Positions 31,003 to 55,509 of a DNA stretch of 64,000 nt are shown here, piece by piece (the first letter of the stretch is position 1; every line of letters begins with the position of its first letter). The notes below the pieces were generated by a model, which was not told where the DNA came from, made no database searches, and saw only the letters and a program-made list of their open reading frames with translations. The DNA lies in sequence record NC_027364.1. One strand, given 5' to 3'. The position numbers were made by a program, and so were the translations under genes.

Positions 31003-31548
31003 TTAGAGACAGTTGTGTACTATCTTATCAAAAGTACTACTGTCAATGTTATATTCATATAAAAATTTAAAATGTGAACCGTAACGCATCATCAGATTAA
31101 ACTCTTCTTCAGTATTGAACTTGTAATCGTGAATAGTCTCAGGGGTACATTTTAAACCTAAGAACTCTATAATTTCAGATGTTACATCATATCCTGAATT
31201 GAAGTATTTAACCCAAACACATTTTCCTTGTGGGTTGTATTTTCTATATTCTCCTTCTAGTTCTCCTTTAATAATATGAGCCTTAACACTTATTGAATTA
31301 TTACTATATCTTTCTTCAAAATAATTACCATACTGGGCTTTTGATATTGTTGGTTTTTGAGTAGGAAGTAATTTAACTGAAGTTACTTCAATGCCATTTT
31401 GCAATTCCTTTATATAAGAAATGCATCCTTTTTCTTTAATAACCACATATCCAGTAAAGATATCTTCGTCTTGTGATTGATTAATGCAATCATCAAAATT
31501 CAAAGTTTTATAAGTAACAGTTTTTTCTTTTCTAATAAATGCCATCAT
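31003..31548 (-). CDS. MORN-like repeat protein with a C-terminal FQ-box-like motif
   Basis: GELEGEYRKYNPQGKCVWVKYFNSG; FNTEEEFNLMM; start re-set to the AGGA-preceded MMAF. Confidence 0.7.
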   Translation of the reverse strand: MMAFIRKEKTVTYKTLNFDDCINQSQDEDIFTGYVVIKEKGCISYIKELQNGIEVTSVKLLPTQKPTISKAQYGNYFEERYSNNSISVKAHIIKGELEGEYRKYNPQGKCVWVKYFNSGYDVTSEIIEFLGLKCTPETIHDYKFNTEEEFNLMMRYGSHFKFLYEYNIDSSTFDKIVHNCL

Positions 31549-31654
31549 TATTCCTATGGAAACATCAATGAATATACGTGACGTTGATTGCATCAACATC
31601 AGTAGAATTACCATGCTACGCATGTCTAATTCTACAAGTACTATTTTCTTTTAA

Positions 31655-32190
31655 TTAATATTGACGGGGTTTGCTTGAGCATATTTCATCCCCCCGCAGG
31701 GGAAAGAACAAAAAAGTTTGACGCTGGTGGCCTTCACATAGTTCATATCACGAATTCTCTTACGAGACGAAAGCGGGTTGCTCTGTTTCTCTCTATCGCG
31801 GTTCTTGTAGCAACGGTCGTCGGTCTTAAACATCCCGACACATAATACAAATACCATATGACCAGTACTTGTATTTGATTTCACAAAATTTGGACGCAAC
31901 TATATTGTATAATTCCGACCGCATATTTCTTATGAAATCTCCCTTAGATAATTGGTAAGGTGCGATCCTTATATGTCTATCGAGGAACTCTCTTTATCCT
32001 ATTGGAGTTCTTTATACAGCCGCATTGCCGTGAGTGGTTCAAACTATGCCATCATCTAACGGGTTTCATTTGCTGTTCGTACTGAAAGGACTACTCATCT
32101 ACCCTCTACTTTTCGAGTGGATTAGGCTTCAATCATTTCCATATGGAACCTTTCAGGATTAAAAAAAGGTGACAACATATTCTGCTGTCA
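31655..32190 (-). ncRNA. candidate large structured non-coding RNA (~530 nt), family unassigned
   Basis: 670-bp gap in a gene-dense genome, GC-richer, at least seven helices; GNRA loop and several GU pairs favour the minus strand; extended -10 at 32197-32205. Confidence 0.5.
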
Positions 32191-32193
32191 CCT
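32161..32193 (-). terminator. intrinsic terminator overlapping a predicted transcription start
   Basis: GGTGACAGCA-GAATA-TGTTGTCACC-T7. Confidence 0.8.
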
Positions 32194-32196
32194 TAC

Positions 32197-32205
32197 ATTA
32201 TATCA
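32197..32205 (-). promoter_or_regulatory. extended -10 promoter element
   Basis: TGATATAAT. Confidence 0.55.
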
Positions 32206-32222
32206 TAAACTTATGGTATGTC

Positions 32223-33080
32223 TCAGTTGTATTCTGTTTTTTCAGTGAAATTAGTTAAGATATCTGCACTTAAGCTTCTCATAACCTCAATCTTACTTGG
32301 CATGAATCTGTGCTTGTTTTTTACATACAACTCGTCATCTTCAATGAAAGATGTGAACATGAATACCATATCTTCACGTGGGATTGAGAGAATATTACAG
32401 TTTTCATTTTCAGCAACAGGGGAATCATTGTAGTACTTAGAGAATGCAGTACTTTGACGACCGATTATGATAGAATTTCGGATTAGAAAATTACTACAGT
32501 ACTGAAAATCTTTGTAGTACTTGTCAAGGATATATGGCATTAACGCTTCTTTCACTTCTTCATATCCATTGGTACTATCAATTTCAGTACAATAATCTTC
32601 TCGGTCTTTTTTCCCTCGATGATTATCAAACTCGTACTCAAAGAATAAATTTTCATTTAATGAATCATTTAAACCAACTGAACCACTACTGTATGAATTT
32701 CGTGAATTTCTATCCTTCATTCGATCATCTGGGCATGATGCATACATAGAAATGTCATGTGTTGACGTACCGATATAAATTTTCTTAGTAATGTGATTGT
32801 ACGCGATGTAATCATAATCTTGTACTCCAGTGAGCATTAACTGGAACATCAATTCATCAGGAACATCAATTAACGGATACTCAAACTTCGAATATCTACT
32901 ACGACAGAAATTCTTTTCAAATGCTCGATATGCGATGAAATCTTTTAGGTTTGTAATAGATTCATGCTCATGTGTACTACTTCTGCGTACATTGACATTA
33001 GTAGACGAGCAATACCCTTCAGATTCTTCTGCGTAGTCATAATAACCCTTATTGTAGTCAACGATTAGATAAAGTTTCAT
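32223..33080 (-). CDS. hypothetical protein with an internal FQ-box
   Basis: 285 aa, GGAG SD; VPDELMFQLML near residues 73-83. Confidence 0.8.
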   Translation of the reverse strand: MKLYLIVDYNKGYYDYAEESEGYCSSTNVNVRRSSTHEHESITNLKDFIAYRAFEKNFCRSRYSKFEYPLIDVPDELMFQLMLTGVQDYDYIAYNHITKKIYIGTSTHDISMYASCPDDRMKDRNSRNSYSSGSVGLNDSLNENLFFEYEFDNHRGKKDREDYCTEIDSTNGYEEVKEALMPYILDKYYKDFQYCSNFLIRNSIIIGRQSTAFSKYYNDSPVAENENCNILSIPREDMVFMFTSFIEDDELYVKNKHRFMPSKIEVMRSLSADILTNFTEKTEYN

Positions 33081-37617: not shown

Positions 37618-38030
37618 TATACACCTTCATATTCATCAAGGAAATCTTCGATGATCATTTCAGCTTCATCCATATGCATCGCATCAACTTCAATAATACG
37701 AATTTTAGATGTATCCCAAATCATAAAGCTAGGAACATTGTCTGGCTCGTAATCATTTTTGTACTGAACAGCATCATAACCTTGAGCCGTGCAATTCTCA
37801 ATAAGTGAACGCCACTCATCATCACTGCCTAAATCTTCACACAGAAGCACGTTATCAACATCAACTTCTAAGGTATGCAAGTATACTGTACATGCGTCAA
37901 CAACGTTTAGTGGGCTTCTCAGCTTGCGTAATGCAGCTTCCAAAGCACTGTGTTTGCCTCCCATATGAAGTCCACCATACGGGATATAAAAGTTATCAAT
38001 TTTTACAGTACTCGCATGATACAGTTTCAT
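37617..38030 (-). CDS. ADP-ribosyltransferase-fold protein (ART-PolyVal-like)
   Basis: LYHAST, GLHMG, A...A, GYDAVQYKN..E, SFMIWD..IRI match the H-type ART core. Confidence 0.6.
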   Translation of the reverse strand: MKLYHASTVKIDNFYIPYGGLHMGGKHSALEAALRKLRSPLNVVDACTVYLHTLEVDVDNVLLCEDLGSDDEWRSLIENCTAQGYDAVQYKNDYEPDNVPSFMIWDTSKIRIIEVDAMHMDEAEMIIEDFLDEYEGV

Positions 38031-38039
38031 ATTTCATTC

Positions 38040-38624
38040 CTATTTCAGTACTTTAGTCAATGCTTTCACAGCGGTTTCGAGTTGAGCATAGTCGTTAATT
38101 GTAAGGTAATGAATACCATGTGCATTCATTTCAGCATCTATTTTACTATATAAATCAAACATGTCAAGGATATGATTGTATGCATATGAAGTATTTGAAA
38201 CACACAATTCTTGGAACAAACGTTCTTCCAAGTCATTCACAACTTCACCATGAATGTCAAGTACTACACCATCTTTGTAAGTATAGTATTCTTCACTCCA
38301 CTCTTCAGAAAGTCGGAACAGTAACGGATTCCCGCCGAACACTTCCATGTCATAGGAATTTATCTCACTAAGTAGTGTTTCACCTGGTTCTGGTGTGAAG
38401 TCGAAATATGCGAGTGTTGAACCATCATAGTCCTTGAGTGATATACCAGTATGATTTAAGCTTACTTCACCATAATTATTATTCTTGAACTTGATTTTGA
38501 TATTAATCTCAATGTATTTTATTGTCTCATCATCACTGAAATTGTAATCAATTTTATACTTTTCCCAAAGAAGTTTGATATCTTTGAAGTACTTTAATTT
38601 ACTTTCAATTTCTTTAAAGTCCAT
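38040..38624 (-). CDS. FQ-box family protein
   Basis: DLEERLFQELCV. Confidence 0.75.
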   Translation of the reverse strand: MDFKEIESKLKYFKDIKLLWEKYKIDYNFSDDETIKYIEINIKIKFKNNNYGEVSLNHTGISLKDYDGSTLAYFDFTPEPGETLLSEINSYDMEVFGGNPLLFRLSEEWSEEYYTYKDGVVLDIHGEVVNDLEERLFQELCVSNTSYAYNHILDMFDLYSKIDAEMNAHGIHYLTINDYAQLETAVKALTKVLK

Positions 38625-54769: not shown

Positions 54770-54920
54770 GGAGCACGTTGCGGGGCGGGGTATTTTTTTG
54801 TTTCAGGAAACATGCCCTGTACTCTGAAAAACACAATATAAAACTTTATATTAAACATATACCTTAACATGTTTTTCAGCGGAAATTTTTTTGACCCCCC
54901 CCTGCGGCCTGTCAAAATGA
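54770..54920. other. non-coding element with G/C runs and nested inverted repeats
   Basis: GCGGGGCGGGG; CTGAAAAACA/TGTTTTTCAG (54824-33, 54870-79); TTTTGAC-C-run-GTCAAAA (54889-917). Confidence 0.55.
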
Positions 54921-54927
54921 AACGTCT

Positions 54928-55137
54928 CTATTTATTCAGCCTAGAAAGCTTGATTTCTTCAATCCTTTTCATTGCACAAAGCCTTCGACTCGTCATCTCG
55001 TATAAATTCAATACTCGGTTTACCGTATTATCTACACTCTGAACCAAATATGTATCCTTCAAAATCAAATCCATCATGTATTCAAAACCCTTAATACTAT
55101 GCGAACTTATCACTTCCGGCTCTTCAAACGTAATCAT
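54928..55137 (-). CDS. small helical hypothetical protein
   Basis: 69 aa. Confidence 0.65.
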   Translation of the reverse strand: MITFEEPEVISSHSIKGFEYMMDLILKDTYLVQSVDNTVNRVLNLYEMTSRRLCAMKRIEEIKLSRLNK

Positions 55138-55327
55138 AATTCCAATCCCCTATTCCCTCTAACCTTCTAAGATATCTTGCGTAAATTATTTCGAAATATC
55201 TGTGCAACGAAATTACGGATTGCTCATAATCATCATTCCTGTACATTGTGCATGTAAGAAAATCATTTAAACCGTAATCTAAACTGCACTTGAACTTCTC
55301 CTTTGCAACATCTCTAAAATTATTCAT
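55124..55327 (-). CDS. small helical hypothetical protein
   Basis: 67 aa, GAGGA SD. Confidence 0.65.
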   Translation of the reverse strand: MNNFRDVAKEKFKCSLDYGLNDFLTCTMYRNDDYEQSVISLHRYFEIIYARYLRRLEGIGDWNYDYV

Positions 55328-55487
55328 AATATGTCCTCTGTACAGCGTAGGTGTACTGTGAACTCAGCACCACTAATAGGTAATCTATATTGTAAGCACG
55401 ATTTCCTCGTTGACTAGCACGACTGGAATAAAGAATATTATCCACATATGCATTGAACTGATCTTCAAATAACTCTTTCATCAGCAT
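55320..55487 (-). CDS. 55-aa protein missed by the ORF track
   Basis: MLMKELFEDQFNAY...VQRTYYE*, stop overlaps the next start. Confidence 0.55.
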   Translation of the reverse strand: MLMKELFEDQFNAYVDNILYSSRASQRGNRAYNIDYLLVVLSSQYTYAVQRTYYE

Positions 55488-55509
55488 TATACCATCACAT
55501 AATCATACA

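Follow-up and report, generated by a model that had tools for sequence, protein, structure and literature searches.

The PBECO4 intergenic region and its homologues

The 64,000-nucleotide (nt) stretch analysed here (record NC_027364.1; hereafter the window, whose numbering is used unless genome positions are indicated) is identical in sequence to positions 62001-126000 of Escherichia phage PBECO4 (KC295538.1), a 348-kilobase (kb) Rak2-like jumbo phage of the genus Asteriusvirus. All annotated genes near the region of interest lie on the minus strand, and two of them, AGC34830 (32223-33080) and AGC34829 (31003-31614), both encoding hypothetical proteins in which no Pfam domains were found, enclose a gap between GenBank coding sequences at 31615-32222. 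A preliminary description, made from this sequence alone, had proposed here a possibly undescribed noncoding RNA (ncRNA) on the minus strand, or else a long regulatory leader. Our comparison of homologues indicates that the gap is very probably the gene for a conserved structured RNA, as opposed to empty DNA, a gene remnant or hairpins assembled by chance.

The gap is richer in guanine and cytosine (GC) than its surroundings, as previously noticed (GC content 0.40 versus 0.28-0.35 in the flanks). It had also been called the largest gap in the window; in a rough check it was the longest stretch without open reading frames (ORFs) of at least 50 amino acids (aa), but not at a cut-off of 70 aa. 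A second stretch of ~640 nt without an ORF of at least 70 aa lies at 54868-55509. The start of AGC34829 is annotated at 31614 and that of its longest ORF lies at 31623, giving 203-206 aa, whereas homologues have 174-176 aa; for this reason the ATG at 31548, on which the earlier gap edge of 31549 was based, may be the true start, in which case the gap would measure 674 nt.

Approximately 480 nt of the gap (roughly 31640-32130) matched other phage genera at 66-76% identity in BLAST searches, with matches in GAP32, CBB, BF, fHe-Yen9-04, 7t3, EJP2, XbC2, XaC1 and Erwinia phages. The core is conserved in Asteriusvirus, Mimasvirus, Eneladusvirus and XaC1-like phages and more weakly in Alcyoneusvirus, and divergent members are carried by Klebsiella phages RaK2 and Muenster; the hosts of the phages with this RNA comprise E. 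coli, Salmonella, Klebsiella, Erwinia, Serratia, Yersinia and Cronobacter. The alignments ended at the flanking genes, and the flanking protein genes had no DNA-level match across genera. Gene order at this locus is kept across genera (cytidylyltransferase, Dam methylase, 175-aa protein, gap, 265-285-aa protein).

Pattern searches of viral, genome and metagenome collections, in which the family was recovered with AGAAAC-N-G-NNNN-ACCCGCUU, yielded 71 distinct full-length copies. Scans of the genome and metagenome collections with a 16-base pattern returned mostly chance matches, and a multi-motif screen was passed by 18 loci: most or all of the remaining motifs were present in 17, and one locus ended at a contig edge. 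The larger contigs among these 18, where listed, measured 230-360 kb and were phage-like. All copies whose origin could be checked lay in jumbo-phage genomes or in phage-like contigs of up to ~380 kb.

The evidence for an RNA comes from comparison of these copies. RNAalifold, applied to 43 of them, predicted 72 base pairs, 44 with compensatory double changes; this prediction was combined with helices from a covariation scan and a per-sequence check of the poorly aligned 5′ end, resulting in a model of 90 pairs. Across the 71 copies, 94.7% of pairs were canonical, compared with 36-44% when the partner was slid by 1-3 columns and ~75% in 200 column shuffles. Pairs changed on both sides numbered 70 of the 90 (33-34 slid; ~57 shuffled), and sequence-pair cells with double changes 1189 (147-177 slid; ~338 shuffled). 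None of the 200 shuffles matched any of the observed values; the copies are related, so that these figures are not probabilities, but the slid controls preserve this relatedness and the difference between observed and slid values is very large. The minus strand is identified as the RNA strand because G-U pairs are frequent in it and would turn into A-C in the complementary strand. Lack of covariation, or homologues with a decayed gene or a coding ORF, had been named in advance as grounds for abandoning the RNA; covariation was present and neither of the latter was seen.

Structural model of the RNA

The structured core, in which all features described below lie on the minus strand, spans ~440 nt in the window (32156-31718) and 379-513 nt across the family. 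A family profile searched with nhmmer found a single copy in the window, at 32160-31717 (E = 2e-99). The model contains at least 14 helices and three pseudoknots (P1 with Px; PK1; P11 across P12 and P13). All helices listed in the preliminary description exist in the sequence, and comparative support was obtained for CTGAAAGG/CCTTTCAG, TTCC-ATAT-GGAA, GAACTC/GAGTTC, the 31845-31875 hairpin, GTCGG/CCGAC and the C4/G6 hairpin.

The 5′ domain (32079-32156) consists of P1, P1a, P2, an invariant GAUGAG and Px. P1 (CTGAAAGG/CCTTTCAG; 32156-32149 with 32089-32082) occurs in at least nine compensatory versions, followed by hairpin P1a (TTCC-ATAT-GGAA, 32148-32137) and P2 (32125-32099). Px, a helix of 3 base pairs (bp; 32094-32092 with 32081-32079), flanks the 3′ strand of P1 and thereby creates a pseudoknot; its versions are GUA/UAC, GAA/UUC, GCA/UGC, GCU/AGC and GUU/AAC, and none of the 71 copies has a non-canonical pair. 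Next to this domain, P3 (32076-32072 with 32020-32016) and P4 (32062-32059 with 32031-32028) are supported by RNAalifold and by pair counts. The P3/P4 domain (32016-32076) surrounds a variable hairpin, P5, which takes two alternative forms across the family, and includes the highly conserved strands AAACCCGUUAG and CACGGCAAUGCGGC, with few variable positions.

Further downstream, hairpin P6 (GAACUC/GAGUUC, 31985-32010) shows four to five pair types per position, and P7 (UAAG/CUUA, 31956-31971) covaries at three of its four pairs. P7 is followed by an invariant UAAGGGA (31952-31946), unpaired in the model. The CCTTA/TAAGG helix proposed in this region did not hold: it showed no covariation, three of its pairs were non-canonical in 13-22 of 71 copies, and its CCUU pairs instead with an upstream AAGG. 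The adjoining insertion domain (31877-31939) is closed by a covarying GAU/AUC helix and carries the conserved module GUACAAUAUAG...CCGUC, a GUACAAUAUAG loop followed by CCGUC and AAAAUU. This module resides in the insertion domain in most copies and in the P14 hairpin in others (family-alignment columns 635-670), and both positions are occupied in PBECO4 paralogue B.

P9 is a 13-bp hairpin (31844-31875), the loop of which forms pseudoknot PK1 (31862-31856 with 31748-31742). All seven PK1 pairs covary, six of them without a non-canonical case in ~60 sequences, and the PK1 sequence differs in each of the four PBECO4 paralogues. PK1 could form within one RNA molecule or between molecules, two arrangements between which covariation within single copies cannot distinguish. 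The remaining core (31742-31839) is a pseudoknotted region with near-invariant joining strands, in which P10 (31839-31835 with 31823-31819), P11 (31814-31810 with 31781-31777), P12 (31800-31796 with 31753-31749), P13 (31793-31789 with 31773-31769) and P14 (31767-31756) all covary. The GTTGCT/AGCAAC helix described earlier turned out to be P11, which covaries and crosses P12 and P13. For TCTC-GTAA-GAGA, the helix was supported, but the GNRA loop assigned to it is not conserved.

Long strands that are unpaired in the model, namely GAUGAG, GAUAGACAUAU, UAAGGGA, ACGACCGUU and AGAAAC...ACCCGCUU, are invariant or nearly so, which points to tertiary contacts or to a binding or active site. Invariant single strands and a relocating module characterise RNAs that adopt a defined fold in three dimensions. 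A hammerhead-like reading of GAUGAG and CGAAA was rejected, as an essential U is missing and no model matched. The GCATATTTC direct repeat reported earlier is present, but it is specific to PBECO4 and close to chance level (for a 9-mer in 600 nt, ~0.7 occurrences are expected by our estimate).

Putative transcription signals, paralogues and a chromosomal copy

A consensus scan recovered the extended -10 motif TGnTATAAT noted previously (32197-32205, minus strand; no good -35), and a terminator scan the hairpin that follows it. The motif lies 10-50 nt upstream of P1 in 61 of the 71 copies, with a plain -10 in seven more, and is found in all four PBECO4 paralogues; it would presumably act as a promoter, and the RNA would then extend over ~530 nt from a predicted start near 32190 through the 3′ tail. 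The hairpin (32194-32166), which together with its U-run occupies 32159-32194 on the minus strand, is the predicted terminator of the upstream gene (32223-33080). It begins 2 nt past the extended -10. Covariation of its stem was seen among group-A orthologues; paralogues B, C and D lack this hairpin and have the promoter motif immediately ahead of P1. An RNA that starts ~7 nt past the -10 may escape termination because part of the 5′ arm of this hairpin would be missing from it. Read-through from upstream would be stopped, and the RNA's own transcript might be spared.

The 3′ end of the core is marked by repeat r1 (A-YC-A-N-CGUCAR, 31718-31728, minus strand), in which CGUCA is invariant. The UCA of r1 and the UGA within GAUGAG (32097-32095) are complementary and can close the RNA by pairing; these three pairs are invariant in 71 of 71 copies, and since they never vary, covariation neither supports nor contradicts them. 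More than half of the copies have an extra 30-55 nt 3′ of r1, the long forms of which are a hairpin with a U-run; a stricter automatic count placed a terminator after r1 in 15 of 71. Beyond it, the tail hairpin CCCC-UGC-GGGG(GG), followed by AUGA (31685-31707, minus strand), is conserved in nearly all copies, even where a terminator-like hairpin separates it from the core, and its pairs vary only between C-G and U-G. A second motif of the r1 type, r2 (AA-YC-N-CGUCAR, 31656-31666, minus strand), changes together with r1; between the two repeats lie the C4/G6 hairpin and, where present, the terminator-like one. CUUCAA stands at both sites in RaK2 and Muenster, and the YC dinucleotides of r1 and r2 likewise correspond. 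The TTGACG repeats described earlier at 31661 and 31718 are real, conserved and co-varying.

A search for an internal complementary partner of r1 and r2 gave none that was consistent. A U-to-G change at 32024, which occurs only in the RaK2 group, was rejected as such a partner because the region is poorly aligned. Alternative pairing between the tail and the P9 loop was also ruled out, as the tail stays constant while PK1 varies, and a small ORF at GGGGGGAUG in the tail was discarded, neither its frame nor its start codon being conserved. UAAGGGA (31946-31952) and the tail GGGGGGAUG (31687-31695) resemble strong Shine-Dalgarno sequences, with no conserved ORF after either; that they contact the 3′ end of 16S ribosomal RNA is pure speculation. 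The tail (UUCCCC...GGGGAU) may also resemble the type I-E repeat of clustered regularly interspaced short palindromic repeats (CRISPR), for which reason the tail hairpin was considered as a candidate RNA anti-CRISPR (solitary repeat mimic), a lead and not a finding: stem and loop lengths presumably differ from those of that repeat, and the tail hairpin is the same in phages whose hosts have different CRISPR types.

BLAST revealed four matching places per Asteriusvirus genome and five in other genera. The PBECO4 copies are dispersed at 38, 94, 195 and 305 kb, the three outside the window (genome positions 37973-38502, 195040-195492 and 304922-305388) having the same orientation as the one within it. 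In a tree of the copies, each paralogue clade holds several genera; the duplications are therefore older than the genera, and all copies have been retained. Downstream of paralogues A, B and C the genes are co-oriented. Paralogue D, in PBECO4 and Serratia phage BF alike, points away from an endonuclease VII gene and runs into two oppositely oriented genes; it carries a terminator-like hairpin of its own. In the Yersinia phage fHe-Yen9-04, the position downstream of paralogue D is taken by a methyltransferase gene. Placed between divergent and opposing genes in PBECO4 and BF, paralogue D cannot serve there as the leader of a neighbouring gene, which argues for a free-standing RNA gene. The gene immediately upstream of paralogue C (genome positions 195040-195513) is AGC35036, which encodes an RpoD-like sigma factor and matches Sigma70 regions 2, 3 and 4, with regions 2 and 4 slightly under the Pfam cut-offs.

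A full-length copy, with promoter motif, terminator-like hairpin, tail and r2, was also found in 2 of 5426 complete E. coli genomes (LR-29-1, NZ_AP027515.1, ~3478960-3479605; NZ_CM130020.1, 245240-245618). It is located in a ~10.7-kb integrative island beside ffs, which contains an integrase split by IS3, a resolvase and candidate defence genes (mSLOG-DUF4326, DUF488, DuOB = PDC-M45, PDC-S16). Similarity to phage DNA is confined within the island to the ~545-nt RNA region, which is 80.6% identical to phage BF paralogue D. No homologues of the flanking proteins were found in Rak2-like phages; one of these proteins had a partial match to just one record, that of an unrelated Pseudomonas phage. 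Approximately 700 nt of unannotated DNA separate the RNA from the next gene. The island copy is maintained as an RNA, because 84 of 87 pairs are retained and 11 of them, changed on both sides relative to the nearest phage relative, still pair. The RNA gene is a self-contained module that is valuable outside a phage genome.

Known RNA classes and possible roles

Rfam 15 (4227 models), searched at gathering thresholds, gave no match in the whole window. At E values up to 10, five weak matches were obtained over 31400-32400, none within the core and all far under threshold, and across nine paralogue loci no family matched the element consistently. The models searched include RNase P, transfer-messenger RNA (tmRNA), group I and II introns, GOLLD, ROOL, OLE, HEARO, riboswitches and self-cleaving ribozymes, to none of which the element could be assigned. 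ARAGORN detected no transfer RNA or tmRNA gene in the window. These results agree with the earlier remark that hallmarks of tmRNA, RNase P and group I/II introns are absent. A group I or II intron was rejected also on the grounds that the element lies between complete genes with separate homologues in all genera and has its own promoter motif and often a terminator-like hairpin. No description of the RNA was found in the searchable literature, including the genome papers of these phages.

In kind, the element resembles GOLLD, ROOL and OLE, which are likewise ncRNAs of several hundred nucleotides with many helices, pseudoknots and conserved unpaired strands, occur in phage genomes, are transcribed on their own, as is predicted here, and have functions that could not be deduced from context. 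It differs from them in matching none of their Rfam models and in its hosts and phages, and we know of no GOLLD, ROOL or OLE RNA with four or five diverged paralogues per genome. RNase P RNA and group I introns offer a second comparison, with 300-450 nt, long-range pseudoknots in the core, modules placed in alternative helices and invariant joining strands. The element differs from these in having no Rfam match at E = 10, in not lying inside a gene and in its helix order, which is unlike the P3-P7 pseudoknot of group I introns or P4 of RNase P. We rate it as a new class of large structured RNA that resembles GOLLD, ROOL and OLE but is a member of none. GOLLD and ROOL are reported to be associated with phages and prophages and to form RNA-only multimers (bioRxiv 10.1101/2024.12.08.627333).

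The only related report found concerns the Pseudomonas jumbo phage PA5oct, a distant relative of the 121Q/PBECO4 phages, in which RNA sequencing (RNA-seq) showed transcription of ncRNA001-004, ORF-free regions of 236-619 nt, two of which account for 1-5% of phage reads (PMC7318152). This shows that jumbo phages of the wider group make abundant long ncRNAs; neither structure nor paralogy has been reported for those of PA5oct. The one compared here, ncRNA002, was rejected as a homologue, as it has none of the family motifs and no profile match.

The reading we favour, and consider somewhat probable, is that of an independently transcribed, trans-acting folded RNA. Host RNA polymerase would begin at the extended -10 early in infection, the RNA would fold into a compact body, and it would act as the core of a ribonucleoprotein, as a catalytic or self-assembling RNA, or as a decoy. 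We infer transcription, the RNA ends and action in trans from sequence. We do not think that the element is a base-pairing small RNA, a DNA site or the leader of the next gene. Several observations weigh against the favoured reading. Same-strand genes follow the island copy as well as paralogues A, B and C, an arrangement that fits a leader too. In many copies the tail and r2 lie beyond a terminator-like hairpin, so that the simple picture of an RNA ending at its terminator fails. The searchable literature held no RNA-seq study of any Rak2-like phage and no observed transcript, and searches of the neighbours of the four PBECO4 copies and the island copy with Pfam, PADLOC and tblastn revealed no RNA-binding or RNA-processing partner. 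Finally, the PBECO4 sequence by itself has a folding energy that does not surpass shuffled controls (z = -1.1 for both strands); because this energy is unremarkable, richness in helices is not evidence by itself, and the evidence comes entirely from homologues.

The strongest alternative, which we nonetheless regard as unlikely, is a cis-acting leader, in which the nascent RNA acts on its own polymerase or on a nearby terminator, either as a processive antiterminator or as an attenuator or riboswitch of very large size. Long operons of the 350-kb genome could then be driven from four or five strong early promoters. Such a role is suggested by the position of the RNA directly after a strong promoter motif, by the terminator-like hairpin that many copies have right after r1, and by the same-strand genes that follow A, B, C and the island copy; the tail, with its hairpin and linear motif, may also bear a loose resemblance to boxB plus boxA. 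HK022 put and Bacillus EAR similarly place a folded RNA between promoter and terminators, in several copies per genome that head transcription units. Those RNAs are simple stem-loops of ~70-120 nt, with no similarity to the element in sequence or model, and the element is about 4-7 times the size of known antitermination RNAs. A leader is further opposed by paralogue D, which has no co-oriented downstream gene and opposes the genes it faces in two genera, and by the 700 nt between the island RNA and the next gene. No alternative pairing between the core and the terminator-like hairpins was seen, these hairpins varying freely, and inspection and a complement search found no alternative pairings of the sensor type.

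Less probable still is a replication-origin transcript, which would persistently hybridise to its DNA template close to the C4/G6 tail and yield a primer after processing, as in ColE1 RNA II or the R-loop origins of T4, with the four or five copies serving as phage origins. Their number and dispersal fit this idea, T4 having a similar number of origins, and PBECO4 possesses T4-like replisome and RNase H genes. The comparison extends to a transcript of ~550 nt made by host RNA polymerase, in which folding matters and a G-run lies near the 3′ part; here, the tail carries a G-run and the distance from promoter to r2 is ~540 nt, similar to the length of RNA II. An island bearing the origin of a helper phage could, moreover, be amplified on infection. 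The element has no sequence relation to RNA II, however, and three pseudoknots and long invariant strands are not known as RNA II features; they represent a constraint on the RNA beyond the apparent needs of a primer. Many copies also have a terminator-like hairpin between core and G-run, and neither iterons nor an AT-rich unwinding element were noticed, although no systematic search for these was made.

A mobile or selfish RNA element, intron-like or ribozyme-based and with r1 and r2 as processing or joining sites, appears very improbable. It would account for copies in different contexts, a bacterial island to which only the RNA was transferred, the co-varying direct repeats and a ribozyme-like pseudoknotted core with invariant strands. 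The copies are nevertheless syntenic across genera and belong to old paralogue clades, which therefore excludes recent mobility; they are located between genes and not within them, the Rfam models of group I/II introns and self-cleaving ribozymes give nothing at E = 10, and r1 and r2 bracket just the 60-100-nt tail instead of the entire element. That the region is a protein-coding gene, decayed or of an unusual kind, or that its DNA is conserved but has no RNA function, can practically be dismissed: short ORFs are annotated across the region in 7t3, Kaldavass and Hallingskeid, among others, but they vary in strand and position between genomes, the longest stop-free runs in the 71 copies have a median of 65 codons against 63 in shuffled sequence, indel lengths are multiples of three in 178 cases and not in 839, substitutions lack a three-base periodicity, and compensatory changes with G-U pairs indicate selection on RNA. 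In the GenBank records of 7t3, Kaldavass and Hallingskeid, three to five short hypothetical ORFs are placed on either strand over the RNA, and these are very likely spurious; our analysis thus corrects several records that have such small ORFs over the region.

The proposal of an undescribed ncRNA on the minus strand accordingly held up on conservation, compensatory pairs, the strand bias of G-U pairs, the promoter motif, the absence of a coding signal and the lack of matches to known classes. What is new about the element is its multi-paralogue arrangement, the co-varying r1 and r2 and the copy in a chromosomal island. RNAs with so much conserved structure of tertiary type are rare, and, to our knowledge, almost every such class studied so far has proved to be a ribozyme, the core of a ribonucleoprotein or an unexpected RNA assembly. 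More tentatively, and as a possibility we hold to be less probable than the free-standing RNA itself, the element may represent a class of large triple-pseudoknotted RNA of which giant phages need several specialised versions, as a catalytic or self-assembling particle or as an origin primer, and which bacteria have captured into a defence island directed against these phages, with the CGUCA repeats read by one dedicated factor or by the active site of the RNA. The RNA is directly testable because some of the phages that carry it grow on laboratory E. coli K-12; among Rak2-like coliphages, Sharanji is recorded on strain MG1655. The retention of four or five old paralogues and the acquisition of only the RNA gene by a bacterial defence-type island are both unusual, and together they suggest a role in the conflict between phage and host or in the running of a very large genome.

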